This document shows, in pieces, positions 37,460-60,531 of a DNA stretch of 64,000 bases; within the stretch, counting starts at the first letter, position 1; each line of letters begins with the position of its first letter. The DNA comes from Bugula neritina (taxonomy: Eukaryota; Animalia; Bryozoa). The stretch spans positions 5,054,662 through 5,118,661 of the forward strand of contig OZ037770.1 of the NCBI GenBank assembly GCA_964035545.1, read 5' to 3'. The translations under genes and the position numbers were made by a program. The notes below the pieces were generated by a model, which was not told the DNA's origin, ran no database searches, and saw nothing but the letters and a program-made list of their open reading frames with translations.

Positions 37460-40400
37460 TGTAATGCGTAGCGTCCATCATCTACTCGGCCTTCTAGTAT
37501 CTGCCTACTACGCTACTAACATACGCTATAGACAACGGGAAGAGCCTAGTAATTAGAGCTGACAGCTATCACCCTTGAGTAGCCGGCAGTCAGCCAGTGG
37601 ATTAGTTATAGTTAGGTTATGTATGCTCTGTCTGATTTATGTAGTGTGTTTTTGTAGTTATTGTATAGTTTTATTTCTGTATCTTGGCACTAAATAAACA
37701 CATATAATCTACTTTAACTTGGCGGTGTTGCATTACTTCAAATACTCAAATAATTAGTGAATGCGCAGTTTCACAATAGTGGTGGCAGCAGTGGGAATAA
37801 TTTAAAACCAATGCTCATAGCCAAAGAGTAGGAAAAGATTGCCAACAAAGAGGACATACCCCATCAGGAGCGAGTCAATCCGGCAGCTATGGAAGATGTC
37901 ATAGGAGTCCCAGCGCTGCCTATGGACAGGTATCAATTTCGGGCTCCCATATATTCAGGAGAAGGGGATGTGGAGCAATTTATTACTGAGTTCAGTGATG
38001 TGGCAGCCATCTGTCAATGGCCTGCCACGGTTACTCTGATACAGTTGTGGTTATCCCTGACGGGGCCAGACAAACCTTATGGGATGGGTCAGGATGTCGG
38101 CAACGTCTGTGATGCATTGAGAGCCCGGTTTTGGCTCACCGCTCGAGATGCGCGTGTGCAACTCCAAGGACTTAGGAGGAATCCTAAGACTACTTTGAAA
38201 GAACACGCGACCGTAGTTGAGCAGCGAGCACAAATCACCTATGGCGACTTGCCTGCAAATGGCCAGCAGAGTCTGGTACTGGATTTTTTCCTCCAGTCTA
38301 ATAACAACTTCGGTTTGAAGCAACACCTGCTGGTAGCTGAGGTTGAGACGATGGAGAGAGATCTCAGGCTTGGGAATGTTTAGTTTCAAGCCGATAGTAT
38401 GTGTCGACCTAGAGCGACAGTACAGCAAGCAAGTTGAGGCCGATGTCGACATTTCGACGTCGTCGGCCAAGTCGGCTGTACATGTCGCCACGGCGGCAGC
38501 CAACGAGCCAACTAGCTTGACCACAACCTTTGTTCGAGAGCTGCTAGCCGAGATCAGGCTTCTGCGCCAACAGTCGACAGCTGAGCAACCCACCAGGTTG
38601 ACGACAGCTGTCGCCGGAAAGCAAGCCCCAGTATGCTGAGCACTTTGTACAATGCTGCCTCCATGATATAAGGAGGCAGTTAAATGACAACGGCCTACCG
38701 TAGACTCCAGCAACCGTGGGCCTCAGTTTAACCCTCTGAGGCCGAGGCCAAAGCCCAAACCCAATAGGGTAAAGATGCCGCCTTTGCCAGAGTAGCAAGT
38801 CCCACGGAGAGTTAGCTGGCCGCAAGGCTTGCGGAAACCTCCGGCTTGGACACTCAAAAACTGCTTTGGAGGCCTGCCTGAGGCGGGGGTGTACGACGAG
38901 TGGAAGCATGACCCTTTTCCTAGCATCGATAAGTCACCAGATGCCTTAGCTGGTAGCAAGTTCTTCATTACGCTGGACTTGCTAAGCGGGCATTGGCAGG
39001 TGCCCCTGAGTCCCGATGCCCCGGACAAAGCAGCATTCATTACTCGCGACAGGCTCTGAAAGTGGAAATTACTGCCATTTAGACTAACATTCGCCCCGGC
39101 AACTTTCCAAAGGCTCATGGAGAAGGTCCTCAGTGGATTACACTGGAAGACCCTCCTCAGATATCTGGACGACGTCATTGTAATCTCCCCAGACTTTTCA
39201 ACTCATGTCAGTTGTCTGTGGGAGGTTTTTGACCGTCTCCGGACAGCTGGACAGAAGCTGAAGCCCTCCAAATCTGCACTCCTGCAGCCGGAAGTCATGT
39301 ACCTGGGCCATGTGGTTGGCCTGACGGGGTTGCTACTGACCCGGAGAAGGTACAGGAGGTAAAGGAGTGGGCTGTTCCCCGTGACCTCCCTGAGTTGCGA
39401 GCATTCCTGGGCCTAGTAGGGTACTACCGGCAGTACATACCTGGCTTTGCAGGGGTGGCTCAGCCGTTAAATCGGCTGACCACAAAGGGGGTCCGGTGGC
39501 AGTGGACACAGGAGGAGCAGCAGGCATTTGACCACCTCAGGCAAGGGCTAATGGAGGCGCCAATTCTGGCGTATCCTGATCCAGCCAAAGAATACATCCT
39601 GGACACCGACGCCAGCGACCACAGTGTGAGAGCTGTTCTGTCTCAAGTTTAGGGTAGAAGTGAGGTAGTCATGGCTTACTACAGCAAGACTCTCGCAGCC
39701 GCCGAGAAGAACTACTGCACCACTAGGAAGGAACTCCTAGCAGTAGTCAAGGCGGTCAAGCACTTTCGGCCATATCTGTATGGGAGATCGTCCCGGTTGC
39801 GAACAGACCATGCATCACTGATATGGCTGTGTAAACGTGCAGAGCCCTTTAGCCAGGGGGCTCGTTGGCTAGAAATTCTTGTTGAGTTCTCTTACCGGAT
39901 AAAGCACCGTGCAGGCCGGAAGCATGGGAATGCCGACGGCATGAGCCACCGGCCGGTAGAGGACTGTAAGCAATGCCTGCACATTAAGAAGCGGAATTGG
40001 GGACCAGCTCGCCTTGACGTGGAAACAAAGTTAGAGGAGGGCGCCGTCTACTGGTGAGAGCATAGCCATCATCAGACCGAAACCCACCTAGACGACGTCC
40101 AAGCGCTCCATGCCAACCCCACTTTGTACCAGAATGTCAAGGAGTTGTGCTGACCCCAGGAGACGCTACTGGGCGCGGTAGAGGACATATTCCGGGGCAA
40201 GAAGAAAGGCCGACAACCTAGCGAGGACCAGCAGCGGCAGGGAGACGCTGAGTTCCAACTCCTCTGTTGCCGCTGGGATTCCCTCAAGGTCAGTCCTGAT
40301 GGCCTCCTCATGATAATGCTAGCAGCAGACAACCGTCAGCAGGAGAGAGACCGCGTCATCTGCCCACGCGCCCTCCGACGGGAACTGATTTAAGACACCC

Positions 40401-43256
40401 ATAAACAGGCTCATTCTTGAGTCAGTCAAGTCATCAGGTGTCTGCAGCTGCGTTGGTATTGGCTTGAAATGACTCGAGACGTACGACTGGGGTTACGTCA
40501 ATGCAAGGTCTGCCAAACTAGCAAGCATGGCCGCCCCACAGAAACCACTGGTCAACGCCGGCTATACGCTGGTCGACCGTGGCAAGTAGTGGTGGTAGAC
40601 CTCGTCAGGCCTATGCCATTATTTGCCAAAGGCAACACCTGGATAGTGGTGCTCATGGACCACTTTACCCGGTGGTTAGATGCTCTAACTATTCCAGATG
40701 CAACAGCCCCTACGGTGGCCCGGATCCTGGATCAAAATGTGTTCTGTTACCCCGGGTTACCCAAGCAGATACATACGGACCAGGGTGCCCAGTTTTGGTC
40801 CCAGCTGATGGGAAACCTTTGCTGAATATGGGGGGTGAACCAGAGTCGGACCACCCCATATCACCAGCAAGAGAACGGATTCGTCGAGCGGAACAACAGA
40901 ATGTTGGGTGACGCCCTGAGGAGCCTGCTCCTCGGTCGGGGTCAGGAAGAATGGGACGTGGTGCTCCCGCAAATCATGCGGGCTTACCGCAGCACACCAC
41001 ACTCCGCCACGCAGGAGATCCCAAATTTTCTGATGCTGGGCCGAGAGACGGGAGTTCCGGAACACCTGACATACCATGTTCCCGCCCCTGAGTTACGGGT
41101 ACATGAAAAAGTGGGGGGTCTGATAAAAATCATTGGCAAAGCTCATGATGCACTGCGTGCCCAGCAGTGGCAGACCCGCACGGAAGACTCAGAAGCGCTC
41201 CTGTTGTACCAGGTGGGAATCTGGGTCTGGATGGCGAGCTATTGCAGGCGGCGCGGACAGTGGGCTAAACTCCAGCCCAAGTTCGTCGGCCCCTACTGCG
41301 TAGTGGAGGTGCTGCCCAACAACACGTACCGTGTGGAGCGCTCTGGACAGGTTTCAGTCCAGAGCAAGCAGCACCTGAAACCTTACTATGCCAGCCCAGA
41401 CGCGGTGGGTCAGACTCCACCCCTCCTGGAGCCCAACAGCCAGTCCAACCGTCGGGGACGGGCCACCCAGCCCCGAGAGGCGAAAATTGTTGCAGATCAG
41501 GAGTAGGCCGCCTTGCTGGAACAGCTGGAACAGCAGCAAAGAGAGGAGTGGCAGCAAGAGCAGCAACAGGCCCGAGGGCCACCACCCTTTCTGAAAGAGG
41601 ACAACCCCACCCACGTGATGGGTGAAGGCGGGGACCCCCCTACTATGGCAGCCGAGAAACCACTGGCACCATCAAGGCCTGCTTCGACTGATAGGAGCCA
41701 GCGGTCGCGAAGACCCCCCAGATACCTGACAGACTTTGCTGTAGGGCATCTAGAGTCACCCCCTCATGATGGTAATCTATCCAGTCTGAATGACTACCAT
41801 ATCTTAGTCGGAAATTCCCTCCATTACCCCGGAAAATTCCACCAAGAAGAAAAAATTTCAGACTGAATTTCGGAGGGCATGCGATCGCACGAGTTGTCTT
41901 TTCGAAATCCGGTGGAAATTCCCAACAGGTCACGTAACACGGGCTTCGGCAAGTAATAACTCTGAAGCACGAGGTTCAGCCATTTCTACTTCTGACACCA
42001 CGCAGTTAGCACGCAATTCAAAAGTTAAATTAAATTCCAACTTTGACACTTCAAAAGTTAATTTGAACTCCATTCTTAATACGCTATCATCAGTCATGGG
42101 AATTACGTTACCAGAAGCTCAATCAGGTACTCCTTTAAGGTTAGATCCTCCGTGTACGGAGTCTAATCGATCTGATATAGACTGGTCAATATTAGATTCA
42201 TTAGCATCTAATTTTTTGAAACCTGAGGCCGAGATAGATCTCGGAGATGACCCTGCCCTCGACTTCTTGTTAGATCGAGACGTGGGCTCGGTCACTCTCT
42301 GTGACTCTTCTCGACCCCCAGTTTGTAACTTGGCTACATACAAACGTATGCCAAATTTTGGCAATAGTGAGACCGGCTTATCACAGCCTCTACTATCTGT
42401 TTTAAAGAAACGTATGGAAACCGAGGAGGTCAGTCAAACCGACTCCTCTCCCCCACCGGTTTCTGTTCCGGCTCTCCGCAGCCAAAAGGACGCCACTTCC
42501 TCTTCCGAGGTGTGTTTCACCAGCGTTAGTGGCCCTGATCCCAAACCGGTCGAGCTCCAGCTCGCCGCCGGGGAGGAGCACGGCATTCTACACGGTGACC
42601 ACCCCACAGGCGGAGACGAAGAGGATGCCCCAATACTGGCTCTGCCTCGGGCCCTGGTCGCCCGCCAGTATTGGATATCCGGAGCTACCAATCTTAAGAT
42701 TGGTCAGGCATGCGATGAGCCGGGCAACCGCATCTGCCATCAGGGTCAGAAGAAATTTTCCTCCGCACTGCGATTGCGGGTTCACGCCCCTCAGCACTAC
42801 ATTAATGTGTTTTGCCCGTGTGGTGAGTTTTTGTACCAGCGGGATTATGTGCTAAGGCACCAGCGCATATCTCGCTCCTACATGGGCTACAAATTTGCTG
42901 TAGACCAGGCTGCCTTTCACGAATTTCGGGACCTGGTGTTGCCACACGTAGCGGATTCCCATATGCGAGCTGCTCTTGCCCAGGGATTTCCCGCGTGTCG
43001 GCCTGTTCAGGAAGAAGAGGGGGAGCCCGTCGCAACACCCCAACCGGCAGCCACCCAACCACTTCGGGTCGTGCTGGCACGGGTCCGATCAGACGCCAAG
43101 GCCGATTCCTCGGACCTGGTTCCCCGACCCTTGGCGACGGGCAAGAAGCAGAGGCGACAGACCAGCCGTAGTACTACTGACCGCCCCAGGCGTCAGACGA
43201 CGGCTCAGCTGGACGAGGAGGTGCATAACTATGTAACTAGCTGCCACAAATGCTGA
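37460..43256 (+). mobile_element. Gypsy LTR retrotransposon 2, degenerate, 3' LTR missing
   Basis: 5' LTR about 37460-37778, PBS TGGTGGCAGCAGTGGG, gag 37889-38700, RT (LDLLSGHWQV, YLDD), RNase H (LDTDAS, TDH), integrase (TDQG, ERNNR, GPY), 3' zinc-finger ORF 42063-43256; protease deleted, many stops. Confidence 0.9.
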
Positions 43257-43951: not shown

Positions 43952-46900
43952 ATGGCAACAGCTGGTGAGTGAAATTGAATACTATTTTATTCACTTATTT
44001 CTTGAAAAGTAGTAATATTTAAACTCTAAAGATATGTTGATATTATGCCACCACCATTTAATATAAATATATAAAACTATTTTATTATCACTACTTCCTA
44101 TAATACTGTTTTATGTCACCATGCAAATAAGCGTAATACTGTGTCACCTATTAGTGTATTACTTCGAAAATAATACAATAGATAAAATTATGCAAGCAGT
44201 TGGGTTGAAGTTGTTTTATCTCAACACAATAAACACTGAACTATAAGCTATACATAAAGTGATTGGTTAAAAAAAATATAAAGCTATCTAATAAAATATA
44301 TGTTAGTCATTGTTATGATTACTGAAATCCACCATATAATGAATCTATTCAATCAGTAGATGACAGGTGTCAGAATGATAGACACCACCTGCTAGCACTG
44401 TGTAATAATCACACTGTTACTGTATTATGTTACAGATAATATGAGAATATGGTTCAGACATTCTGGACAGCCTTCTAAGAGCTTGTCAGATGTAGACAAA
44501 GCTTATACCAAGCCATATACTACTGCTGAGGTGAAACGTGAAGTTGGGAGTTATCATATCACAGATCTGGAAGTGGAAGGGGAAATTCCAAGTAACATTG
44601 GAGAGATTGCTGGTAGAGCCCTGTGTCTATATGTTTTTAAACTGAGTGACGGAGCAAGTCTAGACAAGTGAGTGTCTATTAAAATAGCTGTGGAAATGAT
44701 AAATGAATTCAATTGTGTTATTTATTAAATGATAATTGATAATAGATGCTGAAGTTAAAGCATCTTTTTGCTCATAATATATTCATACAATATAATATAC
44801 ATCAACATAGTAATATGTGCAACATTGTATGTAATCCAATTAAGCTTATAGTTGTAGAAACTAGGAAATGTAAAACTGCCTCTACTGCTACTTCATAATA
44901 TTGAATAAGTCATGTTTTATGTATATATAGCTAAAAGCTGGAGTAATGTACAGTTTATAATATATTATACAGAAGACTATGTTATGTCATCAACTGCAAA
45001 TTTACAATCTTAAACATTAGTTAATATATTAATTTACAGAGCATTGTAGAGTGAGGCCTTATGTACTATAAACTAACAGCTAACCTTGTATAATGAAACT
45101 TCCTCTCCTCACCTACAACATAATATAACTGAAACTCTTTGGTGTTTTTTGCATCAATATATCTGTTTCCTGCATGTTTTATGTTGAATACACAAGTAGT
45201 CCGATATAATGGTATATATTATTTTGATATATGACACACTTTATATCATGGTAAAAAACCTAAATATGCATATTCTTTGAAGTTATCTAATAGCTTGTCC
45301 TAACGTATAAATAATACAGTTTAATGGCATGCCATTGTATATCCTCATATCACAGAACTTTTCATAATCAATAATAAAACAGCCATCGGCAGTTTACTGG
45401 CAATCATGATAATAATTGAATCCTTCTTAGCTTCTTGCATCAATCACTTTGATTATCCATTACTCGAATGAATTTGTTTTCTGCATTTTTTACCTGGCTG
45501 ACTGTGCTTAGCAATATAACATGTACAGCGTATATTAATATGACACAGGAGACTACATATATTACACACTTTATATTACAGTCTATGCCAGCTGACTCAG
45601 TTAGAGAAACTAAACTTAAGTGGGAATCCTCTCAAGACAGTACCAGAAGTTGTGTCATTATTAACATCACTTAAAGAGTTGTATATGTGGAGCTGTGATT
45701 TATCTACTCTACCTGAGAGGTTTGTGGAGCACAATCTTTTTTGTTTCTAACATTCAATGATTGACATGTTGATATAATGCTTGCCAAGTATTGCTAATTA
45801 GTATGTCACTATGTATTGTTGAAAAGCATAAAGTTAAGTTACATATTTCTTGAGGCTATATAATATTAGAGTTTCTGAAAACTTGAAAATAATTAATTTT
45901 CAGTTTTCTGGCATTACATTTCCTATTACTATGAAACCTTCTCCAACAAATACTATAGCACTCGCTTATAGTTTACTAGAATCTATTTCACATTAAATGC
46001 TTATTAGGTTTCGGTATTTCACTTTGAATTTGCTTTGTTGCAATAAATATGTTTCTTGGATATTTTACTTGATTGAATACACAAGTAGTATATACTATTA
46101 TCATGATACAGTGGTTTAAACACATAAAAAACTTTATATTACAGCCTGTGTAAGCTGACTCAGCTAGAGAAACTAAACATAGGATATAATCCTCTCAACA
46201 CAGTACCAGAAGTTGTGTCATCACTTACATCACTTAAAGAGTTGGATATGTGGAACTGTAAATTATCTACTCTACCTGAGAGGTTTGTGGAACACAGTCT
46301 TTCTTGTTTCAAACACTCAATAATTCACATTTTGATATAATGCTTACCGAGTATTGGTAATTAGTATGTCACTGTGTGTTGTTGAAAAGCATAGAGTTAA
46401 AAGTTACATATTTCTTGAGGCTATATGATATTAGAGTTTCTGAAAACTTGAAAATAAATAATATGTTTCAGTTATCTGGCATTACATTTCCTATTACTAT
46501 GAAATCTTCTTCAACAAACACTATAGCACTCGCTTGTAGCTTACTAGAATCTATTTCACATTAAATGCTTATTAGGTTTCGGTATTTCACTTTGAATTTG
46601 CTTTGTTGCTATAAATATGTTTTTTGGATATTTTACTTGATTGAATACACAAGTAGTATATACTATTATCATGATACAGTGGTTTAAACACATAACACAC
46701 TTTATGTTACAGCCTGTGTAAGCTGACTCAGTTAGAGAAACAATACATGGGATGGAATCCTCTCAACACAGTACCAGAAGTTGTGTCATCACTCACATCA
46801 ATTAAAGAGTTGGATATGTGGAGCTGTGAGTTATCTACTCTACCTGGGAGGTTTGTATTGCACAATATTATCTCTGTTTCAAACATTTAATATTTCACTT

Positions 46901-49900
46901 CTTTAATGCTTATCAAGTAGTGTTATGCTAATTTATTATATATTGCCAACGTATGTTAAAAAACCTAAATATGCATTTTCGAACTTGTCCAATAGTTTGT
47001 CCTAAGGTGGAAATAATACAGCCTTATGGTATGCTATTGTATATCCTTATATCACAAGAACCTTTTGTAATGAATAATAAAACAGCCATCTGCAGTTTAC
47101 TGGCAATCATGGTAATAATCGAATCTTTCTTAGCTTCTTGCGTCACGCATTTTGACTATCCATTACCGCAATGAATTTTTTTTTGCATTTTTTACCTGGC
47201 TGACTGTGCTTAGCAATATAACATGTATATTATCATGTGTATTATTATGACACAGTAGACTACATATATCATACCCTTTATAATTATTGCAGTCTATGCC
47301 AGCTGACTCAGTTAGAGAAACTAGACATAAGATGGAATCCTCTCAACACAATACCAGAAGTTGTGTCATCACTCACATCACTTAAAGAGTTGAATATGAA
47401 GCACTGTGAATTATCTACTCTACCTGAAAGGTTTGTGGAACACAGTCTTTCTTGTTTCAAACACTCAATAATTCACATGTTGATATAATGCTTACCAAAT
47501 ATTGCTATAATTAGTATGTCACTATGTATTGTTGAAAAGCATAAAGCTCTTAATCGCATATTCCTTGAGACTATATGATATTAGAATTTCTCAAAACTTA
47601 AAAATAAATATGTTTCAGTTTTCTGGCATTACATTTCCTATTGCTATAAAACCTTCTTCAACAAATACTATAGCACCCACTTGTAGTTCACTAGAATCTA
47701 GTTCATGTTAAATGCTTTTTAGCTTTTGGTATTCTACTTTGAATTTGCCTTGTTGCAATAAAGTTATTTCTTGGATATTTTACCTGATTGAATACACAAG
47801 TATGGTATAATATACAGTATATAATAATATCCTGATACAGTGGATTATATATATTATGCAGTCAATATTACAGTCTATGTCAGCTGACTCAGTTAGAGAA
47901 ACTATACATAGAAAAGAATCCTCTCAACACAGTACCAGAAGTTGTGTCATCACTCACATCACTTAAAGAGTTGGATATGAGGAACTGTGAATTATCTACT
48001 CTACCTGAGAGGTTTGTGGATCACAGTCTTTCTTGTTTCAAACACTCAATAATTCACATGTTGATAAAATGCTTACCAAGTATTGGGAATTAGTATGTCA
48101 CTATGTATTGTTGAAAAGCATAAAGTTATAAATTACATATTTCTTGAGGCTATATTGAATTAGAGTTTCTCATTACTTGAAAATAAATATGTTTCAGTTA
48201 TCTGTCATTACATTTCCTATCGCTATAAAACTTTTTTAACAAATATTATAGCATCCACTTGTAGTTTACTATAGTGTGTATTTCTCATTAAATGGTTATT
48301 AGAGCCTTCTGTACTTTACTATGAATATGCCTTAGCGTAATAAATTTGCTATTTGGATATTTTACTTGATTGAATATGCAGTGTTTGTTATGATACAATA
48401 AATTAAATATATCACATACTTCTTATTACAGTCTATGTCAGCTGACTCAGTTAGAGAAACTAGACATAGAAGGGAATCCTCTCAACACAGTACCAGAAGT
48501 TGTGTCATTACTCACATCACTTAAAGAGTTGAATATGGGGAGATGTAACTTATCTAATCTACCTGAGAGGTTTGTGTGCCACAACGAGTTTTATATATCA
48601 CTTTTAACATCCAATAATTGTTATTTTGAAGCAGATTTCAACACAGTAAATACTACATTAAGATGTTTATACTTTTTCTCTGCAAACCTACATATGAATC
48701 TCATCGTTTCTGGGGATATTGTCAATTAGCACACTATCTAGAAGTTTCCTCTGCTTCACAAGTTATTTTATAGTATTTCTATATCTTTTTGAATATTTCC
48801 CATGATAGGTTGACTGGGCTGTTTTTCAGAAATCGTTTTATTAACTCTTTTCATTATATTATAACTATAGCTACTTCTGTACACATAATATTATATTGTT
48901 ATGGTAACGCAGTTTCTTATCACTGTCTAATTGAATGCACAAGTGCTATATACAGTACATAATATTATCCTGATACAGTGGATTACATGTATTATGCACT
49001 TTATATTACAGTCTATGTCAGGTGACTCAGATAGAGAAACTAAACATAGGAGATAATCCTCTCTACACAGTACCAGAAGTTGTGTCATCACTCACATCAC
49101 TTAAAGAGTTGGATATGGAGAGCTGTGGATTACCTACTCTGCCTGAGAGGTTTGTGGAACACAGTCTTTTTTGTTTCAAAAACTGAATAATTCACATGTT
49201 TTTATAATGCTTACCAAGTGTTGTTAATTAATATGTCACTATGTATTGTTGAAAAGCATAAAGCTATAAATTGAAAAATTTTCTTGAGTCTATATGATAT
49301 TAGAGTTTCTAAACACTTGAAAATAAATATGTTTCAGTTATTAGGCATTACATTTCTCAATGCTATAAAGCCTTCTTCAACAAATACCATAGCATCCACT
49401 TGTAGTTTACTAGAATCTATTTCATGTTAAATGCTTATCAGCTTTCAGTATTTTACTTTGAATTTGCTTTATTGCAATAAGTTTGTTTCTTGGATATTTT
49501 ACCTGATTGAATACACAAGTATAGTATATACAGTATATAATAATATCCTGATACAGTAGATTACATATATTATGCACTTTATATTACAGTCTGTGTCAGC
49601 TGATTCAGTTAGAGAAACTAAACATAGCAAGGAATCTTCTCAAAACAGTACCAGAAGTTTTGTCATCACTCACATCACTTAAAGATTTGAATATGGGGAA
49701 GTGTAAATTATCTACTCTACCTGAGAGGTTTGTTTGTCACTACAAATTTTATATCATTTTCAACATTCAATAATTATTATTTTGTAGCAGAATTTCATCA
49801 CAGTAAATACTACATTAAGATGTTTATACTTTTTTTCTGCAAACCTCCATATGAATCTTACCGTTTCTGGGGATATTGTTAATTAGCACGCTATCTAGAA

Positions 49901-52900
49901 ATTTCCCGACTTCACAAATAAATTTTTAGTCTTCCAATATCTTTTCTGAAATGCTTCCCATAATAGGTTGACTGGGCTTTTCTTCAGAAATCGTTTTATC
50001 AACTCTTTTCATTATATTATAATGATAGCTACTTCTGTACACATAATTGGTATATATTGTAGTAATTTTGGTAATTACTGGTTTTGTGGGCTTCTAGCGA
50101 GCAATATATTTATATTATCTTCCAATAATATCACGGCTTGTAACAGGAATGAATGATTTATTTATACACAATAAAAGTAGTAGCAAAACGATAAATCCGG
50201 TATCACTGGTAAAAATATACATCTATCTTACACTAACTAGCCATCATACTCTGAGTATGGCTGCTATCTACATCCAGCGCCCTCTGCGCATCGCTGGGGC
50301 TCTCATGTGACAGATATATGATTGGCTGGGGAGCGCGTGGGATAACATACTACACTCCCCACTACACTGCCTCTCCCAGCAGGAAGCCCACCTTCCTGAT
50401 AATACCAAAATAAAAAATTAAAATAACAACAAAAAAACAATAAGATATCTGCATCACAAGATCAAAAAATGTATACTTAGGCCAACGGCCTATTAAAAAA
50501 AAAATCTTGTTAAAATATAAAAATTATGTACTATAAAACTAAGAGATTGTATATGTACCAAGAGCCTCTGGTCTGGCACCAAGAGATATGATGTGTAGAG
50601 AGACGGTAAGTGAGGCACAACCTGCGGCGCAGATCAGGAGGACAGCTGGATGGAGTTAGGGACGGGGAAATAGAAAGGGAAGGAGAACGTCATCCACGAC
50701 ACGTGTCGGGGCAATGTGGAGGGTAGACACTCAGTCTTCATCATCCCTCTTGAGCTGGGCCACAGAGTCCCGGAGAGCCTTGAGTTCAGAAGCGGCGGCT
50801 GATATCCTAGGCGCCAACCGCTTGATCTCCCTCTCTCTAGTTCATGCATCCGTTGCTCCATCTCTCTTAGATTTCTAGCAACAGAGGAGTGGCGGTCGGG
50901 GGATGAAGATTGCTAACGCCGGCGTCATCTCTGGGGGATTTCTATCCGTTGTACGACTACTACGGGTACGGTGTTGGAAAAGGGCACAGTGTGAGCAGGG
51001 GGTGACGGGCGAGGTATTGTGAGCTTCCTAAACCCAGGGGATTTGGGGCAGGGTCCTTGGGTAATGGTACGGGGAGCGGGGAATTTTTGGCTCAGCCGTT
51101 TGTAACGTGCAGGGTCTGAAATGAATGGCTTGGTGAGGCCTAGAAAAGTAGAGAAGGAAAGCTTGTTCACATTGTAGAGATGTCCAGTGTGACACTCCAT
51201 AGTCCTCTGGTAACGGAGGATGTAGTCCCTGTGGTAGCTGTACTCCCCACAGGGACAGAAGGTGGTGATGAAATGTTGAGGGATGTGTACTCGGAGGCGG
51301 CGAGGTGTGGTAAAATGCTGTTGACAAAGCCGGCAGGTGGTGCAGTCGTCGTCTCCTTTATTTTGTTGAATCATGTCCTCGGTATGTTGGGTAACCCAGC
51401 TAGACCGGGTTATGAGTATTTCTGGTAGTGTTGTGGAGGTAGGTTCCGTCTCCTAAGCCATCTCCAATGGTGGCATATCATTGTAGTTAGGAGAGCGAGT
51501 GGTACCTGAAAGAGCAGAATTATTGTTGGATCGAATTTGATCTTTACAGCATAATTCTGATGACAATCGACTGTTACTAGTCTGAGAGTCATGCATCTTT
51601 TTGTACGGCACTCGAGAGACTGTGTTTGGATGCCTAGACTGACTGAGAAACATAGTGACATGGCTGGAACTGTTTGCCCCGGGCGCATTAATTCCACCTA
51701 CTACTCCGCCCTCGCAAAAAATGATATTTTCGTGGTGTTTACAACTCCCACGTTTCGCTGCCAGTCTCTCCGTACGGCACTCAGCTTGGCCTTCATATCT
51801 GCCGCTTGTAACACAGTCACATACGAAGTCTTTCAAATATGCTGGGGGTTGCCTAGTACGTTGTCCACTTTCTAAGGGAAGTGGTGTGCTAGTTGGGGGA
51901 GATGGTGTAGTCACTGCTGGTGGGGGTGTACTCACTGGTGGACTTTTATGTTCCGCCGGTGGCGTTTTCGGCCTGCTATTGACTGTTGTATCATTTTCAA
52001 GATCTCCAGATGGAGCCCTCCCCTGGGGGGGTTATGCACTTCCGGAGCTGAAACAGGTTCCGGAAGTGGTGGCGTTAGACTTGGCGCTGGAGGTGGTGGG
52101 CGCACTTTTGGTAACGCAAGTGGCCTTTCCTGCCTCACCAAGTCTTCTGCCCGCGGCATGATCACTTCATACTCTGGTTCAGGTCGCCGCCGCCCGCGCG
52201 TTGCTGTCTGCCTCCTGGGCTCTAACAACGGGGGAGCTTTTCCTGCCGCACCTGGGCTAGTCCAATACGACTTCAAGCGAGCCTCATTTTAGATAGACAC
52301 CTGTCCTGAGCGCTCAAACTTGTAGGTGTGATTGGGCATCACTTCAACTACCGCGTAGGGTCTCACGAACTTAGGCTGTAGCTTAGCCGCCTGTTCTCGA
52401 TGCCTACGGCAGTTGACCATTCAGACCCAGTCTCCAACTTGGTAGAGGGGTGGTTCTTCGGAGTCTTCTTTTTGCACTTGCCACTGCTTTTTCCGCAGTA
52501 TTTCGTGTGCAACCTTCATTTGCTCTACCGATTTGCTGGCATACCCAAATCCCAAACCCCAAATCCTGGGGGGTAACCCAGTCTTCCACAGCTCGTACTC
52601 TTTCAGGATCAGTCGCCACGCCATGACGGCCGACGTGGTGCCCCAGGTACTTCACCTCCAGCTGCAAGAGAGCGCTCTTGGAAGGTTTGAGCTTCAGGCC
52701 GGCACCTCTGAGTCATTCGAACATCTCCTGCATATGACTGACGTGTGTCTGGAAATCCGGGAAAATCACAATGACAACATCGAGGTAGACTAGCAGTGTC
52801 TCCCAGTGGAGCCCACTGAGGACCTGTTCCATGAGCCTCTGAAACGTGGCGGGGGCGGAGGTCAACCCAAAGGGTAGTACTTTCCACTTCCACAGTCCGT

Positions 52901-55900
52901 TCCATGTGATGAACGCCGTCTTCTCCTGGGCGTCGGGAGTCAGAGGGACCTGCCAATAACCGCTCAGCAAGTTTAGTGTGCTAAAGTACTTGCTGCCGGC
53001 CAGGGCGTCCAGAGATTCATCAATCCGAGGTAGAGGGTAGGCGTCCTGTATGCTTACGCTATTTAGTTTGCGGTAATCCACACAGAACCACCAACTGCCG
53101 TTTTTCTTCCGGACCAGGACGACCGGCGAGCTCCACGCACTATGTGCTGGCTCTATGAGGCCGCGGTCCAAAAGATCCCGGACTTGTCGGCTGACCTCCT
53201 TTTCTTCATTAGTAAAAAATCACTTAGTAGATTATATAGTATGTTTGATTTAGGTAATTCAAGTTCTACTTTTATTTATTTTGAAATAAAAGATCTGCTT
53301 TTATATTGTAAACCAAAGAAGACAAAAAAAATTATTAAATATTGCAACTTTGTTTTTTTTTCATGCTCTTTTTTGGTTATCTATCTCCAATTCTCAGTGT
53401 AATAGAAACCAATTTTTATCCTATTCTTGTTCTTAAACAGCCTGTTAATATATTGTTTCATAATTACTTTACAATTCTAAATTTTGAATTAACTTGCCTT
53501 TAAAAATGTAACGTGTTCCTGCAAGATGATGACTTTCCAGAATTTTATTCTCTCGTAGTGAAATAATTCACAACTTCTATTTCCTGTCTAGAAACTATAA
53601 TACATTTATTAGAGCAATTAGTGAGAGGTTGTGGCAGAAGTATTTTATTCTACTTGAAATTACTTTAATGGCTTGTGTAGATGTTTCAGAGCTCTACTGT
53701 GTTCCTATTTGATGATAAATTGCATGTATTATGACACATATAAAACAATATTCCTTATAATTATAACATCCATATAGTAGAATATCAGTGTGAGTAGTTA
53801 CTCAGTGATCAGAAATGTCAGAAGTATTTTATTTTCACTTGACATAACTTTAATGCCTTATGCAGAATATGCCACAAAGCTGTAGCCTACCATGTTCATG
53901 TTTGCTGATAACTGTGTTATGGCACATACTAGGAATTTTCTACTCTGTAGTATAAAATATTACTCTCTCTAGTAGAACAGCAGTGTGAACAGTTACTCAG
54001 TTATCTGCCATATAGAAAAAGATGATAGTATTACATGTAGGTTGTTGTTTTTTATGACAGTACTTAGTACAGATGTAGCACTTTTCTTACCAAATATATA
54101 CTTACAATTATACTGTTATATTATATATCTTTATAAAATAATTAAAATGTTATGCATCGTATATATATAATATGGTACTTGTACATAATTGTAACTTAGA
54201 AATACTTGTTTTCTTTCCTTAATTAATGTACTAATTCAAAGTATTGTATATAAACTTGTTATAGTAACTGCCACTTGGTACTATATTATGTGTAATAATT
54301 GTTATACTAATATTGGGTATCTTTATGAAAACTATTATATCATTTACCTGTATAGCTAGGTCTAATAATAGAAATATTATATATTATTAGAATACAGAGA
54401 TTAAAGAAGTTACAGAAACTCACAATTTCAGAGAATAATTTCACCAGTCTACCTTCTTCAGTATGTGCATTGATTAATCTGCACACACTGGATATATCCA
54501 GCAACAGATCCATGACATCTTTGAACCCTGAGATACTACAGCTAACACATCTTGGATCCTTCGATACAGATGGATGTGATGCTCTTACATCTCCTCCACA
54601 AGAAGTCTGTGAGAGAGGACTGGAGTCTGTGCGACAATACTACACAGACTTGGCTAAAGGTGCAGGTAGAAATCTTCCATTTGCTACAATAGTGGTGTTG
54701 GGGAACACCATGGCAGGTAAAACCAGCCTAATCAAAACATTACAGAGCACTGACAGGAAGAGAGTTCTGACTGACAGAAGTCCTAATGCAGAGCATGATG
54801 AGACCACAAAGGTGTTTAATGTGGAAGAGGTGGAAGTGAATGGTACAACTCTTCGTCTCATAGATATGGGAGGCCAAGAGGTCTACCATATCACATACCA
54901 TTTGACACTAAGACAGAATTGTGTACCAGTAGTTGTAGTCAACATGGAGCAGTATGATCAGATTTCGAAAATGTCTACAGACAGAGAGGCTGTGAGAAAG
55001 TTGGCCTTTGACTTCATGTCTCACCTCTATCTCGCTCATCCATTTCTTGGCCCACCTAAGCTTGTCTTCACACACAAAGATAAGTTTCCGAGTGAAGTTT
55101 TTCAACAGCTTCGAAGAAATCTTCTTGAAGTGTCTGAGCAGTTTTGCAAAAATATTCTTGAAGAAGAGAAAGGTTTAGAAGGTGACTTTGCTCGAATTCA
55201 ACATTTCACTCAATCAAACGGAAAAGTGTTCTCCGACGACAACATATATGAAGTTGGAAAATTTGACGAGTACAAGATATTTGAATCGATTAAAAAATCT
55301 CTTCTTCAAAGTTGCCGACACTTTATCAAACCCCTTCCAAAAGTCTGGGAGGATGTCAACACAAAAGTGTTGTCCTTGCAGTCCGCACACAATACCTTTG
55401 ATGAAATCCTGGCAGAGATAAAGAAAGAACGGAATGATATTGATAGAAACCAATTGGATACCATCATCATGTACATGCATGATTGTGGAAAAGTTCTCTG
55501 GTATAAGAATGTTGATGCACTCAGGCCATACATATTTCACAAGATTACAGAAGTTACCAAACTGCTGTGTGTCTTGTATCACCATGATCCAAACATCTGG
55601 CAGAGCAGAGTAGATCAGTTCAAACCATATTTATCAAGAGGAGTGAGAATTGAGAAGCAGGACTTTGAAGAGTCTGTGAACTACTTCCAAGCAACTGGCC
55701 TAATGATGCAATCCCTTCTTGAATATCTGATAGCTCAGGAAACTTTATTTAGAAATCCGGGTGATGTTGAAATTGGGCTTTGTTTGCTCAGCACGTTCCG
55801 TTTGTTGTATGGCCCTAGGAATGATGAATCCTATGATTCCTACTTCATAATCCCTCAGTTTGCCAAAGAATCCTACAGCCTCTCCTACACTCAACAAAAG

Positions 55901-58900
55901 GAGTTACTGCTTCATACTGAGACTCAGTTTAATGGTCTGGCGTTACCGCAGCATGTCTACCATCAAATGACTGTTGGTTTGTTAGAGATGTTTTCTAAAG
56001 AGTTTGCTACAATGCAAGTGAAGAGGAATGGTGCTAACGTCTACCAAGATGAAATATACACACAACTGGTACACGATTACGCATTGAGAAGAGTTTTACT
56101 CTACGTTTCATCTGATGCGTCCAACATTTCCAGAATGTGGGAGAATCTCATTTCGGTCAACAACAACATCCTCAGACATGTTATGGAGACTTGGACTGCT
56201 AGTCGACCAGTCACTGCCTGCATTTGTGCTCACTGCTTGCTACTTGGGGTTTCCTGTCCTAAAAAACTCTTTCACCCCAAATGGTGTCTTCGATCCTTAA
56301 AAAACCTGCTGCCACCTAATGTCAAGAAGTGTGGTGGAGCTTCAAAGATGTTATGTAATGGAGAGGAGGTCCCTAGCGCTTTAATCCACCCATGTATGTT
56401 CACTCATAAAATTGAATTTCAACAGAAATATTTTCAATAATTGTTTCAACAGATAAATATTTACTACTTTGTGTTGCAAAAAACTTTTAGTAAAAATTTT
56501 GAGCAATTAGTTGAATATTTTGTCTTAATTATAAAATCGCAACTTAAAAGCATGAGCTCCTATTCACATGTCATTATCTCGTAAATTAAATTCTTTAAGG
56601 TTTAGTAATACAAATCTTGTTTGTTCTATTCAGGTGAGAAATTGTCAGAAACAGAATCAAATAAGTTGAAGAAGCTAGTTGCTGAGCTCAAACTGCGAGG
56701 AGATCAGAACAATTCAACTGGTAAATTTTTTTAGACTGAACTTGATGTGGGTCATTTTACTTAATTTAGTACAGGAGTATGACCTGTGTCATGAACACAC
56801 CTAAATAATCAAACCTACTCCTAATTTTGCTTGATTTCCCATGTTTTTTCCTAATTATTCAGCTACTTTTGACTGCAGACTGTCATGAAAAAACCATATT
56901 TCTCTGAAATCAAAAGTAGCTGAATAATTAGGAAAAAATATGGGAAATTAAGCAAAATTTAGAAGAACCTTGATTTTTTAGGTGTGTTCATTTAAGCTTT
57001 ACTACTTTTGGGCAAAACTCATGTTCATTAGCAGCTAAAATGTAAAAAAATAGCTAAAAACAAGTGTGTTCATCACTTTTGGGCAAAAACTTATGTTAAT
57101 TAGCAGTTAAATTGTAAAAAATAGCTAAAAACTGGAGATTTCCAGTGTGCACTAAATTAAGTAAAATGACCTATGTGTACAGCCACCACTTGATAAAACT
57201 CCTTGTTTTGCAAAGCTGGCCATACATGTAGATATCTAAGAGCTTTTTTATGCATGCGTTCATTGTAATCCATTGCTTTTTGCTGCTAGTGGTTGAGAAA
57301 AATTTTAATTGTATGGCTTTTAAATGATGAAAAAAATCAACTGTTCACATGACTGTCTAGAAATATTAGCTGATGATCTGAGTGATCTCTCTGAAGATGA
57401 TGACAATCTGTACCTTGATGGAGAGAATGGAGAAGGCCTGAAGCTGATACAACTTGAATTGAAGCCAACCACCAACCCAAAGATAAAGCAGCTGTTCTCA
57501 GATACTGACAAGGTGAATGTATCAGTTGATGAATATATTATGTCTATAGACTCTCTTTACTAGATAATCATGACTATAGTCGTTCAATTACTTTTAGAAA
57601 AAGTTCAGTCTGAACGCAATTTTTCCATTTACTTCAGTTAACTTTTAATTTTTAGCCATGTCTGTTTTTGGGCTGTGTCTGTTTGGTTAAGGTTTAATCT
57701 GTTGTCACACGGTTAGGAAATATTTGTAGTGTCGAGATTTCTGGCCCCTTTGATGTATTGATTTGTGCACCTGCATGCATGGTTGAATATTTTCTGCAAC
57801 ATATTCTGATTTTTTTGTGAAGAGTAGCAGTAGTATATAAACATTATTCCAAAAGATATTAAAGGTCAGATGTAAATAAAGACTAAAAGAGAGGTAGAGA
57901 GGTCCGTGGTGTCCTTAAGAAATAAACTGGATGTAGTGTTAAGATCGCCTATAAGTCTCTGTGGGATAATCTCAGTGGGACAAAATTGTTTTTCGCCTGG
58001 AACCTTAAACTTTTCTGTACCTTCACCATAGTTTGCTATTGCATTCTATGGTATCTTTAAAGTTAGTAAATACTTTGTTGAAGAGGTTTGGCTTTTGAAG
58101 TTTAGTTCACATATAATGGTTTAAATGTCAAAATTGATGGTATCTTGTCAGTATGGCCATGCATTGTCATTATTTACTTCCATAGCTTTACCAATTTATA
58201 TACTTGATTTAGAAAAATGTAGGATTATTTACAAGCTATTATCAACAAATCAGAATTAATATACTTGTAGCCTGCTATTGTTTTTTAAACCATACCTCAA
58301 GGATATTTTTTTATGCTTAACCGACTACCAAATGCAATGAACTATTTCGTTAGTAAAATTATCATTCGGTCTGATACATTGAAATTAATTTTATTCTAGT
58401 TTATGCTACCCAATTGGCTAATAAAATAAAATCTAAAATACAAAAAGCAATTGAGATATGAAATGTTTTTTTTCAAAAGTATGTTTGACTGGTTTTTTAC
58501 AAGACTTAAAAATTTAAGACCTGTTTGGAGTTTGAGAATTACTACTGTATGCAATCCTCTAACTATCTTTTTATCCAGGTGTTCAGTATGACCAGAAAGA
58601 GAGAAAAAGCTCTGATAATAAACAACAAGCATTTTGTTGAAAGACCAGACTTATGCAGGAAAGGTTCAGATGCTGATGTTGAAAACATGTCTGTCATGTT
58701 GAAATCTCTCAAGTTTGATGTTGAGACACACACAGACCTGACAGCAGAGGTATGTTGTTATGGTGGAAGTAATACGAGCACTATTTAACCATAACACCTT
58801 GCAAATTGATACAATGTTGCACTGTAACTGTTCAGTCTATTAATGCTTGAAAATTAGGACTGTATGGAAAACCAAAAGCATGTTTGCTGCTGGTCACAAT

Positions 58901-60531
58901 TTTGTTTTTTTGCAGGTTCAGAAATTATTATTTTATTCAGTCATCGTAACTTTGTATCGATTATTAAACATCGCTATTTTCAAACTTGTAGGAAATGCTG
59001 TCTGCTGTGAAGTCTGAGATAAGAAGAAAAAAAAGGAATGGCTTGGGCTGTCAAATACTGGTTATTATGACTCATGGTGGAGAAGATAACTGCATCTATG
59101 GAACTGACCTTGAGCAGGTCAACCTTACAGACTTCTATGATTTTCTCGCTCCTCTGAGTCTGAAGCCTAAACCTACAGTTGTCATCCTACAAGCTTGCAG
59201 TGGAGGTAATTACATTTTTGTATAGAAAACTTTCATTTTTAGTCAAGTAGTGAAAATAATACAGAGACCCTTGAAAAGTTTTTTCTGTACTGATCAAATT
59301 TCTTTTTTACTCATCACGGTGCAAGTTTGAATGCGTTTGTTTTTCTTGCAGCAAACATTGATGTTAATCGAGGCAGATCAGATCTTGCAGCAGCTCAAGA
59401 AGAAGAAACTGAAGCTGTCTCTTCTACACATTCTGAAGCTGATTATGATGATATTGTATATCCTGAAACACCCAGTGTGATAAGACCCATCAGACCTGTC
59501 TCACCACCAGAATATAGAGTAGAAGAACATATGACAAGACTGGATATTGATAATCTTCTTGTTCTGAAGAGTAACGTCTGCTGTAAGTATAATAAGAGAC
59601 AGTGATAGGCTGATATTTCTAAACTGTTGTACTTTGTCACCTATCTAAAAATTGTTCTTTGCCGTTTTCTTGCGTTACTTCCACATTTTTAATCTTGTTG
59701 ATTTGATAAGCTTCTAAACTGAGGTGACTAAAATGTTTTCTAGAACTTTGAGATTTAAATTGTGTTACAGTTTAGCTTAAAACATCTTATACTTTGTCTG
59801 ACTAGACCATGATTTTGGCTGCATTTAATATTATTATAGCATCAAAGAGACATCCTGAGTATGGATCTCCCATGATTAGAGTCCTAGTATCTTCAATCTA
59901 CAAACATGCCTGTCACCGTGATCTCCACACCATCTTTCAGCAGGTAAGTTGAAAGCTCAAAAGTGTTTTTGCTATTTTAACTTTTATTCAAGAAATAATT
60001 TCTCATCATGGCATCTCTTCCATCTCCATGTTCAAACCATTATGTCATTTGAAAGAAACAATTTAAACTGTTCTGAGTACAAGAGAAAGTCATTCAATGT
60101 TTTACTTGTTTAAATTGTAGAGTTTAGTTTCTGTTGTTTCAATTTCTTTAGAGTAATGGCTCAGTACTATATTGATAGTTTCTCTCCTTTTATAATAATA
60201 TGTTCTTGTAGTCTGCTATAACAACTAGTTTAATTTATTAAATGACATGACTGTAGTGGACAACTCCTAAAGTTTTACTACTCAGGATTGTTAAAGTATA
60301 TTCTAACAGCTGGGAGTTGTACCTTATTTCTTCTAGTAGTGAATTGATAAACAATCTTACTAGTTCTTACTTACTCTACAGGTACAGACTAAATTAGTGA
60401 AGAAACTCTATGCAGATGAAGATTCAGAAAGAAGCAGAAATTTGGTTGTAATCTGGAAGACTCTTCCTCCCCGTAAAAGACTTTACCTGTTTCCTGGCTT
60501 TGATGGGTTGAGTGAAGAGGCCAAATCCTAA
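43952..60531 (+). CDS. LRR-Roc-COR-caspase gene copy B, complete, about 1486 aa. Exons 43952-43964, 44436-44667, eight LRR exons, 54391-56393, 56634-56720, 57361-57512, 58579-58749, 58992-59205, 59352-59582, 59840-59943, 60382-60531
   Basis: Kozak aaccATGg; all junctions GT-AG and phase-compatible; summed CDS 4461 nt with no internal stop seen; Roc GNTMAGKTS/DMGG/THKD; caspase MTHG/QACSG; AATAAA at 61097. Confidence 0.85.
45582..45719 (+). CDS. LRR exon 1 (138 bp, phase 2-2): LCQLTQLEKLNLSGNPLKTVPEVVSLLTSLKELYMWSCDLSTLPE
   Basis: cag| ... AG|gtttgt; two 23-aa LRRs. Confidence 0.9.
46145..46282 (+). CDS. LRR exon 2 (NIGYN / DMWNC)
   Basis: Same 138-bp structure. Confidence 0.9.
46713..46850 (+). 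CDS. LRR exon 3 (YMGWN / DMWSC)
   Basis: Same 138-bp structure. Confidence 0.9.
47293..47430 (+). CDS. LRR exon 4 (DIRWN / NMKHC)
   Basis: Same structure; within ORF 47237-47488. Confidence 0.9.
47874..48011 (+). CDS. LRR exon 5 (YIEKN / DMRNC)
   Basis: Same 138-bp structure. Confidence 0.9.
48432..48569 (+). CDS. LRR exon 6 (DIEGN / NMGRC)
   Basis: Same 138-bp structure. Confidence 0.9.
49012..49149 (+). CDS. LRR exon 7 (NIGDN / DMESC)
   Basis: Same 138-bp structure. Confidence 0.9.
49590..49727 (+). CDS. LRR exon 8 (NIARN / NMGKC)
   Basis: Same 138-bp structure. Confidence 0.9.
50058..53207 (-). mobile_element. Gypsy LTR retrotransposon 3, 5'-truncated and internally deleted, intronic antisense
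   Basis: RT 53171-52713 (WSSPVVLV, CVDYRKLN, PFGL), integrase C-terminus, zinc-finger ORF 51374-50925, PPT, 3' LTR about 50366-50058 (TGTAGT...ACTACA). Confidence 0.88.
54391..56393 (+). CDS. Copy B large exon: last LRRs + Roc GTPase + COR
   Basis: ORF 54470-56440; 2003 nt, same length as in copy A. Confidence 0.92.
58579..60531 (+). CDS. Copy B caspase (peptidase C14A) exons
   Basis: VFSMTRKREKALIINN, CRKGSDAD, MTHG, QACSG, SKRHPEYGS, LYLFPG. Confidence 0.88.

Follow-up and report, generated by a model that had tools for sequence, protein, structure and literature searches.

Introduction

The closest described counterparts of the gene reported here are the LRR-ROCO genes of the brown algae Ectocarpus and Saccharina (Zambounis et al., 2012, PMC3341825; Teng et al., 2024, PMC11378527). 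In these genes, as in ours, the LRRs precede Roc and COR and are carried on short tandem phase-2 exons, and recombination has its hot spot in the LRR domain. They differ in that the algal genes encode one LRR per 72-nt exon rather than two per 138-nt exon. A second precedent comes from bacterial AP-GTPase (Roc-COR) conflict systems, in which N-terminal LRRs are combined with variable C-terminal effectors that include caspases (Kaur et al., 2021, PMC8195603). As in the present gene, a single chain carries rapidly evolving LRRs, a Roc-type GTPase plus COR, and an effector, but these systems are prokaryotic and intronless and so lack exon modularity. Among animals, MFHAS1/MASL1 and other metazoan LRR-Roc-COR proteins share the N-terminal LRRs followed by Roc and COR; MFHAS1 itself, to our knowledge, exists in single copy and lacks both a caspase and an array of cassette exons.

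Plant NLRs and RLPs and animal NLRs and TLRs belong to large clustered germline families that evolve by birth and death and by unequal crossing-over, and in which solvent-exposed LRR residues are under diversifying selection. The family described below resembles them in its clustering in the germline, in selection on the LRR surface and in unequal crossing-over; unlike plant and animal NLRs, it uses a Roc-COR switch rather than NB-ARC or NACHT, and its caspase effector is directly fused. Lamprey and hagfish VLRs likewise use LRR cassettes whose concave-face residues are hypervariable. In the germline, a VLR gene is incomplete, and somatic assembly fills it in from flanking cassettes without splice sites, whereas the germline gene considered here is complete and each of its cassettes is a normal exon with AG/GT flanks.

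We know of no described bryozoan receptors for the recognition of pathogens, symbionts, or foreign colonies, and a literature search for receptors with such tasks in bryozoans found none; nor did it return a specific account of ROCO expansions in bryozoans or other invertebrates, or any description of the LRR-Roc-COR-caspase family. Here, we analyze a 64,000-nucleotide stretch of the Bugula neritina genome (the window) and propose that its eight LRR exons are very probably the ligand-sensing arm of one germline-encoded LRR-Roc-COR-caspase gene, a member of a diversifying family of at least 100 genes.

Results

Anatomy of the gene

Exactly eight LRR exons of 138 nt apiece lie on the plus strand between 45582 and 49727, each preceded by a pyrimidine-rich tract and CAG and followed by GTTTGT (Table 1). 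Their content is 45 whole codons plus split codons, that is, two 23-residue LRRs, and because frame 2 alone is open, both introns around each exon are in phase 2. The preliminary description of this DNA had reported eight such phase 2-2 exons; their coordinates, AG/GT flanks, and frame are confirmed here, and its list of residue strings at the x positions is correct. The first coding exon, with its start codon at 44441, comprises 75 codons plus 2 nt and ends in phase 2. It has no match in Pfam and is predicted to form an N-terminal cap ahead of the LRR array. The Roc-COR exon is in frame with E8, and this frame is open up to 56440. The complete order is thus N-terminal exon, eight LRR exons, Roc-COR exon, and caspase exons (∼58.5–60 kb), and the coupling of the array to a caspase, previously suggested, holds in that a Roc-COR GTPase and a caspase with its His/Cys dyad lie downstream.

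Table 1. Positions of the features within the window.
Feature	Position	Strand	Remarks
First coding exon	44436–44667	+	Acceptor ttacag; donor GTGAGT at 44668
LRR cassette exon E1	45582–45719	+	Phase 2-2; x residues N.SG / Y.WS.D; LRR_4 35.8 bits
LRR cassette exon E2	46145–46282	+	RNA-like contig stops exactly at 46282
LRR cassette exon E3	46713–46850	+	138 nt, phase 2-2, two LRRs
Intron 3, class B, chimeric	46851–47292	+	Final ∼330 nt 85% identical to the intron before E1
LRR cassette exon E4	47293–47430	+	138 nt, phase 2-2, two LRRs
Duplicate block	47866–55372	+	7.5 kb, 99.4% identical to C6:4802486-4809999
LRR cassette exon E5	47874–48011	+	Contains the segmental-duplication junction
LRR cassette exon E6	48432–48569	+	'Terminal' type: LSNLPE ending, class C intron next
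Intron 6, chimeric	48570–49011	+	Class C, then class A
LRR cassette exon E7	49012–49149	+	Same sequence as in the 99% paralogue
LRR cassette exon E8	49590–49727	+	Differs from the 99% paralogue at 6 nt, 5 in hypervariable codons
Last LRR intron, 4.7 kb	49728–54390	+	GC-rich retroelement remnant inside
Roc-COR exon (final LRRs, Roc GTPase, COR)	54391–56440	+	Acceptor 54389–54390, phase 2
Caspase (Peptidase_C14) open pieces	58525–58788, 58995–59225, 59809–59952	+	His/Cys dyad

When three LRR exons were scored singly against PF12799 (LRR_4, '2 copies'), they gave 35.8, 26.4, and 29.1 bits, so that the 27-bit cut-off was reached in two of the three; the LxxLxLxxN/CxL motif with its 23-residue period is present in the consensus over 70 exons. 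The Roc GTPase profile (PF08477) scores 32.1 bits on the translation of 54470–56440, against a cut-off of 27. COR-A (PF16095) gives 19.1 bits, below its 35.3-bit cut-off, at residues 290–356, the expected place after Roc, and the homologues P0032–P0044 carry PF16095 in precomputed Pfam. The separate caspase pieces score 40.3, 29.5, and 13.5 bits with PF00656 (cut-off 21.4), and their translations predict that the catalytic His (in ..THGG..) and Cys (in ..QACSGG..) are both kept.

Several features of public RNA-like runs match this gene model. They cover exon bins and hardly any intron bins, contain GT..AG joints at the predicted exon ends, and include contigs on the first coding exon at 44506–44612. 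A loose contig end just 5′ of 44441 resembles an upstream exon ending at 43965. The runs are kept as contigs of 50–125 nt, and in one of them (X4) 426 of the 608 placed pieces fit two places. Since the contigs fit several exons, which exon joins which cannot be told from them.

Remodelling of the array

The introns of the array fall into three classes, and the array is therefore no simple eightfold tandem repeat. Neighbouring introns had been described as highly similar, and the pair 45720–46144 and 46283–46712 is indeed 92.6% identical. Because the end of intron 3 matches the intron before E1, E4 resembles a 'first exon', as though another array had been appended here. Intron 6 is likewise composite: its first 320 nt are 87% identical to the beginning of the long last intron, its final 87 nt are 88.5% identical to intron 7, and the chimera is the trace of an unequal crossover that added E7 and E8. 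Other arrays have from 7 up to 16–17 exons, with internal multi-exon repeats showing 0 mismatches in 400 intron nucleotides. Tandem Repeats Finder reported nothing in the array, the unit of ∼570 nt being longer than its 500-nt period limit; the repeat exons were found with BLAST and an nhmmer profile. Apart from ordinary splice signals, the intron ends contain no conserved element; mutually exclusive clusters of the Dscam kind, which place exactly one exon of a cluster in each transcript, use docking and selector RNA elements.

The right half of the gene has a recent segmental duplicate, the 99.4% identical block, whereas the closest relative of the left half reaches at most 86% identity. Homology begins at 47866, inside or at E5, and continues past the 7.5 kb compared; the left part of E5 is only ∼90% like the paralogue's exon, and from ∼47991 on identity is 99.7%. 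The window gene has 8 LRR exons versus 15 in the paralogue with the 99% identical Roc-COR exon; by way of comparison, recent duplicates in brown algae differ by 13 versus 17. The unequal crossover envisaged in the preliminary description is upheld by the E5 junction and by the difference in exon count, which show that exon number and order were remodelled through recombination between paralogues. Germline exon duplication and unequal recombination are well supported. On the minus strand, the last LRR intron contains an ORF for a reverse transcriptase (52713–53171; RVT_1, E 1.6e-20); the paralogue carries this retroelement remnant too, and it therefore predates the duplication.

Hypervariable codons and selection

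Variation among the exons is concentrated at codons 11, 13, 14, 34, 36, 37, and 39. These seven codons, 15% of the length, hold 51% of the nucleotide differences among the window's eight exons, which are 60% identical there versus ∼93% elsewhere; per-codon entropy is 1.8–3.1 bits at the seven and at most 1.1 bits elsewhere. They correspond to x positions 5, 7, and 8 of the LxxLxLxxN/C motif, together with position 10 in the second repeat. The last of these, codon 39, comes directly after the Cys and is an extra hypervariable position beyond those listed earlier. Positions 2 and 3 are conserved in these exons (E-K / K-E); in other LRR receptors they are often variable. By textbook LRR solenoid geometry, the variable residues would line the concave face. 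When a single 45-residue exon was modelled with AlphaFold2 on a 70-exon alignment, the result was all-helical (pLDDT 68), not an LRR fold, and useless for mapping. Of the earlier claim that the concave-face x positions vary, the match to the motif stands, and the placement on the concave face rests on motif geometry.

Selection was measured in 300 kb of paralogous DNA, a sample that covers the chromosome-6 sub-family only and holds fewer than half of the genome's exons. Among its 155 exon matches, 149 are intact, being open, 138 nt long, and flanked by AG/GT. In 69 independent nearest pairs, dN at hypervariable codons is 4.45 times the intron divergence (CI 3.7–5.3) and 4.43 times exon dS; the same ratio is 0.45 at scaffold codons. 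Over all 149 intact exons, the hypervariable codons change 4.4 times as fast as flanking introns or synonymous sites (CI 3.6–5.4), and omega at the scaffold is ∼0.5. The hypervariable set was partly picked by its own variability, which is mitigated by the a priori motif positions and by a held-out test that left out the window's exons, in which pN was 0.265 versus 0.072 for introns and six codons were each significant after Bonferroni correction. A maximum likelihood codon model, whose assumptions are violated by 135-nt trees and a history of recombination, gave an omega of 4.61 at the variable codons versus 0.76 at the other 38 (likelihood ratio test against omega = 1: 2dlnL 58.5, p 2e-14). 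Strong diversifying selection at the x positions is thus well supported; the site-wise check of the diversification proposed earlier gave omega values of 4.4–4.6, well above 1, compared with a reported mean of ∼5.9 at the positively selected x positions of the LxxLxLxxN motif in brown algae.

The recent duplicate pair offers a direct view of this process. Changes affect 6 of 63 hypervariable nucleotides (9.5%), 13 of ∼6015 intron nucleotides (0.22%), and 1 of 351 other exon nucleotides, an excess in hypervariable codons with a Fisher p of 2.4e-8, and all seven exon changes are nonsynonymous.

The gene family

A first look at the genome gave 343–372 candidates for the LRR exon and at least 138 for the Roc-COR exon; all 67 of the latter that were scored were strong, and most are open. 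Some Roc-COR paralogues contain in-frame stops. In all, the genome holds at least 350 of the LRR exons. The family comprises at least 100 LRR-Roc-COR-caspase genes clustered on a few chromosomes, with clusters on contigs C1, C4, and C5 among them. In Watersipora subatra, homologues have the same two-LRR phase 2-2 exon at a length of 141 nt, present once or at least three times, and one homologue has a caspase. The Roc-COR exon is 37–38% identical to the Watersipora proteins, which NCBI names 'MFHAS1-like'.

Discussion

We propose that the symmetrical phase 2-2 exon with its two LRRs is the building block of the receptor. Because neighbouring units (an exon plus a ∼430-nt intron) are 82–93% alike, unequal homologous recombination among them, within and between paralogues, brings gain, loss, and exchange of exon blocks. 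Diversifying selection then replaces residues at motif positions 5, 7, and 8 (and 10 in the second repeat), and scaffold, splice sites, and reading frame are preserved throughout. The proteins may act in the cytosol as sensors: a ligand bound by the LRR arm would flip the Roc-COR GTPase switch, and the switch would in turn activate the fused caspase, with cell death or signalling in immunity or in allorecognition between colonies as the outcome.

The alternatives concern both the origin of the variation and the way in which it is used. Short-patch gene conversion, rather than new point mutation, may make most of the differences between very young duplicates, with selection working on a common pool of variable codons. 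Young pairs with 0–4 mismatches per 400 intron nucleotides do have 6–14 exon changes, either clustered in one repeat or spread exon-wide, and codons 36–37 of E8 differ at four of six adjacent bases from the 99% paralogue. However, the divergent segments are absent from all the other exons among the 149 sampled (a search in which tracts of at least ∼20 nt are testable), and genome-wide the best other match is 95% for E5 and, besides its own paralogue, 91% for E8, so that no donor was found among the 149 exons or, for E5 and E8, in the genome. Among 140 exons, the two repeats occur as 90 and 105 distinct cassettes, with no four-gamete combinations. We regard conversion as a tentative, somewhat doubtful account of these differences. 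A reading of the array as a pseudogene or as decaying repetitive DNA, variable because constraint is relaxed, is scarcely credible. In-frame stops in some Roc-COR paralogues and the retroelement in the last LRR intron would fit decay, but relaxed constraint predicts an omega of ∼1 throughout, against 4.4–4.6 at seven codons and 0.45–0.76 at the other 38. Length, frame, and splice sites are kept in 149 of 155 exons, the window gene's Roc-COR frame is open with the caspase dyad kept, and the exons are covered by RNA-like runs.

A different kind of alternative places diversity within the individual. Under combinatorial splicing, the choice among the eight exons would vary from cell to cell and multiply the germline repertoire, broadly in the spirit of Dscam. 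This reading is invited by eight symmetrical exons with near-identical splice sites and by the ROCO genes of Ectocarpus, whose LRR exons are reported to be alternatively spliced (PMC11378527). The apparent exon-skipping GT..AG joints 46280 -> 47872 (in three runs) and 46280 -> 48430 point the same way, but they have only 20–28 nt on the shorter side of contigs of 50–65 nt, E2 and E8 are the same over their last 26 nt, as are E5 and E6 over their first 31 nt, and these ends recur in hundreds of paralogous exons. 'Backward' joints of the same kind appear too, showing the ambiguity. Both kinds of joint were rejected as evidence, their exon ends being common to exons and paralogues. We consider combinatorial splicing unlikely: the earlier proposal that any subset splices in frame stands insofar as phase permits skipping, and combinatorial use (2^8 forms) is unsupported, the contigs being ambiguous. 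Somatic DNA rearrangement, by VLR-like copy choice or V(D)J-like joining, would reshuffle cassettes in single cells; it draws only on the modular anatomy and on a hypothesis raised for Ectocarpus (PMC3341825), and is highly improbable. Against it stand a complete, open germline gene in which each cassette has canonical splice sites, a family numbering at least 100 complete genes, and exon counts that need no bank of orphan cassettes. The recombination traces are fixed in the assembly and common to paralogues. No match among 155 lies on the non-coding strand, bar one 40-nt reverse fragment; in Ectocarpus, intact LRR exons do occur on that strand inside introns, compared with 0 of 149 here. The suggestion that somatic recombination builds a repertoire is unsupported here: the germline gene is complete, its splice sites are canonical, and all cassettes lie on the coding strand. 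This pattern is what a multigene family in the germline shows, as opposed to a system of VLR-like assembly. That cells or zooids use different cassette subsets or orders, whether through regulated exon choice or somatic recombination, is quite improbable; if true, such use would turn ∼100 genes into a far larger anticipatory receptor repertoire in an invertebrate.

The earlier comparison with brown-algal ROCO genes is apt; domain order, exon phase, selection, and change in exon number are shared. The present genes differ in their animal host, their C-terminal caspase, and the larger family (at least 138 Roc-COR exons), and the likeness of the brown-algal and bryozoan exon arrays is probably convergent. 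Together with the parallel to plant NLRs, this match suggests convergent solutions to the same problem.

Colonial animals like bryozoans must separate pathogens, symbionts, and foreign colonies from self, and the family provides candidate germline-encoded immune or self-recognition receptors, as judged from sequence. In one chain, this animal family of at least 100 genes joins a GTPase switch and a death protease to an LRR surface that is diversifying rapidly, and it offers experimental handles on the ligands that drive selection, on caspase activation by the switch, and on diversity from exon choice.

Exon array and gene anatomy

A BLAST search of the window with the first cassette exon, E1, returned exactly eight full-length copies (E1–E8), all on the + strand, each 138 nt long, with 85–89% identity. 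Each is preceded by a pyrimidine-rich tract and CAG and followed by GTTTGT, and the second frame is the sole open frame, so that the introns on both sides are in phase 2 and the product of each exon is a pair of 23-residue LRRs. The Pfam LRR_4 model ('two copies') matched three single exons at 26.4–35.8 bits, with the 27-bit cut-off reached in two of the three. In the 2-kb exon that follows the array, the Roc match (32.1 bits) exceeds the cut-off and the COR-A match is weak; exons farther downstream give Peptidase_C14 matches, which include a His in THGG and a Cys in QACSGG. The LRR array belongs to a complete germline gene.

Coordinates of the gene features and retroelement domains in the window
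Feature	Position	Strand	Remarks
First coding exon	44436-44667	+	ATG at 44441, phase-2 end
Exon starts E1-E8	45582, 46145, 46713, 47293, 47874, 48432, 49012, 49590	+	BLAST
Last LRR intron	4.7 kb, between E8 and 54391	+	houses retroelement remnant
Retroelement remnant	50200-53200		in last LRR intron
Reverse transcriptase	52713-53171	-	RVT_1, E 1.6e-20
Large exon	start 54391, 2 kb	+	in frame with E8; last LRRs, Roc, COR-A
Aspartyl protease and integrase zinc-binding domain	18-20 kb		GC-rich island
Integrase core and SH3	40.8-41.5 kb		GC-rich island

Four sequencing runs, three of them RNA-like, were compared with the window. Depth lies on exon-containing bins and is about zero in most intron bins, contig ends coincide with exon ends, and GT..AG joints match the predicted boundaries. 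The pieces in these runs are 50–125 nt long and the majority match more than one exon, and exon-skipping and backward joints are consequently unassignable. Exon skipping is possible on these data, but the suggestion that exon subsets are combined by splicing, or recombined somatically, into a receptor repertoire is unsupported. VLR-type assembly is likewise unsupported, since the gene is already complete in the germline. The only two base variants seen within LRR exons both lie in variable codons (47981 in E5 codon 36 and 48473 in E6 codon 14); they may be alleles or stem from paralogues.

Selection on the variable codons

Seven variable codons (11, 13, 14, 34, 36, 37 and 39) make up 15% of exon length and carry 51% of the nucleotide differences among E1–E8, with 60% identity in these codons versus ~93% elsewhere. 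In the first repeat they correspond to positions 5, 7 and 8 of LxxLxLxxN, and in the second to positions 5, 7, 8 and 10 of LxxLxLxxCxL, codon 39 being an addition to the set noted earlier; motif positions 2 and 3 are conserved. Across 149 exons from paralogous arrays, Shannon entropy is 1.8–3.1 bits at the seven codons and at most 1.1 at the other 38, which form the scaffold.

A greedy pairing of exons with the most similar 200-nt intron flanks yielded 69 independent pairs with a flank divergence of 0.070, an exon-wide pS of 0.070, a scaffold pN of 0.033 and a hypervariable pN of 0.265. Corrected dN at the hypervariable codons exceeds intron divergence by a factor of 4.45 (bootstrap CI 3.7–5.3) and dS by a factor of 4.43 (CI 3.6–5.5), versus a scaffold ratio of 0.45 in the same pairs. 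As a guard against circularity, a held-out test left out the window exons and fixed the six positions of the preliminary description beforehand; pN was 0.265 versus 0.072 for introns, and change exceeded neutral expectation individually at codons 11, 13, 14, 36, 37 and 39 with Bonferroni correction, and nominally at codon 34. Fitted to 140 distinct exons, a short alignment of recombining sequences, a GY94 codon model gave an omega of 4.61 for the seven codons versus 0.76 for the rest, and fixing omega at 1 cost 29 log-likelihood units (p 2e-14). The preliminary description was accurate as to the eight phase 2-2 exons with their paired repeats, and its claim that the x positions are diversified is borne out by faster-than-neutral change in the pairs, the held-out test and the codon model.

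A recent duplicate, and point mutation or patch conversion

The right half of the gene (47866–55372) is 99.4% identical to a segmental duplicate on the same contig (C6:4802486–4809999), and the two genes share 99% identity in their Roc-COR exons; left of 47866, no genomic match exceeds 86% identity. E5 differs between the copies at 13 sites up to 47990, beyond which only scattered intron changes occur, placing the duplication junction in E5 or at its edge. The paralogue carries 15 LRR exons, as against 8 in the window gene. With E5 left out, we counted 13 substitutions in ~6015 nt of intron (0.22%), 1 in 351 non-variable LRR-exon nt and 6 in 63 variable-codon nt (9.5%; Fisher test, p 2.4e-8); each of the seven exon changes is nonsynonymous. 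The retroelement remnant in the last LRR intron is common to both copies, and its insertion hence predates the duplication. Two GC-rich islands (14351–20762 and 37889–43256; 49–56% GC versus ~33% around them) contain retroelement ORFs and look like LTR-retrotransposon copies between ROCO genes.

Some young exon pairs have identical flanks, yet 6–14 clustered exon changes. In the pairs C6:4548641/4859220, C6:4547503/4801914 and C6:4548083/4858662, 400 nt of intron flank show 0–4 differences and the 138-nt exon differs at 6–14 sites, mostly in variable codons. Such changes reflect either unusually fast selected change or patch conversion from unsampled exons. None of the sampled exons proved to be a donor for the divergent patches, and a genome-wide search found no donor for E5 (best match 95%) or for E8 (best other match 91%); conversion of very short tracts is possible. 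Variable cassettes form a very large pool: the 140 exons hold 90 and 105 distinct versions of the two repeats.

Assembly of the array and extent of the family

The introns of the array fall into three classes. Introns 1, 2, 4, 5 and 7 form one class (class A; 82–93% identical), intron 3 resembles the intron preceding E1 (85%), and intron 6 resembles the long last intron at its start (87%) and class A at its end (88.5%); E6 has sequence features of the terminal exons of other arrays. These features point to a block structure, and the array reads as a first-type intron with E1–E3, a first-type intron with E4–E6 and the start of a last-type intron, and E7–E8 with the last intron, blocks that unequal crossovers have brought together. 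Multi-exon repeats with identical introns (0/400 mismatches) occur in other arrays, showing that duplication is ongoing. Elsewhere on C6, some neighbouring cassette exons lie only 118–190 nt apart rather than ~430 (4643096–4643489, 4486804–4487266 and 3984038–3984484); array introns can therefore shrink strongly, and the shortened ones may mark deletion-type crossovers.

In the 216-Mb genome, where the window lies at C6:5054662–5118661, a first look gave 343–372 candidate cassette exons and 138 candidate Roc-COR exons; the 67 of the latter that were scored are without exception strong, and most are open. Family clusters lie on contigs C6 (2.5–6.3 Mb), C1 (32.5–35 Mb) and C5. In ~300 kb of paralogous DNA, a search with an nhmmer profile built from E1–E8 found 155 matches, 149 of them intact (138 nt, AG/GT-flanked and open) and, without exception, on the coding strand of their own array; arrays there hold from 7 to 16–17 cassette exons. 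A second family member has its Roc-COR exon at 873–2852 (+), 90% identical to 54470–56440, and its LRR array upstream (C6:5035557–5042990), where 13 cassette exons include a four-exon unit present three times with almost identical introns, one copy having a frame-breaking 139-nt exon.

Relation to other species and known systems

Among named proteins, the closest are 'MFHAS1-like' proteins of the bryozoan Watersipora subatra (37–38% identity), including one with a caspase domain; unnamed matches from JGI metagenomes are closer. Several sequencing runs containing the DNA of the window carry the label symbiont metagenome. In W. subatra, a single 141-nt exon in phase 2-2 that encodes two LRRs is present in the homologue P0039 (LRR-Roc-caspase); a second homologue, P0037, contains three or more exons of this kind, 10–14 kb apart, that differ at the same x positions as the window exons. 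The two-LRR cassette exon thus predates the Bugula neritina genome, and the dense arrays with ~430-nt introns are an expansion. In the homologous W. subatra gene at OY755167.1 (21595–46520), the 141-nt two-LRR exons are spread across 10–14-kb introns, very unlike the compact arrays here.

The brown-algal LRR-ROCO family is the closest described system. In that family, a single LRR is encoded per 72-nt phase-2 exon, the same motif positions are under selection with omega near 6, and recent duplicates have 13 and 17 exons (PMC3341825, PMC11378527); alternative splicing has been reported (PMC11378527) and somatic recombination proposed (PMC3341825). The present locus differs in having two repeats per exon, a fused caspase, an animal host, a larger family and no reverse-strand cassettes. 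Its single-chain LRR, Roc-COR and caspase layout is shared with bacterial conflict systems (PMC8195603). Overall, the array forms the LRR sensor arm of a ROCO-caspase gene family; it is encoded in the germline, modular at the exon level and under positive selection, a conclusion that is statistically strong.
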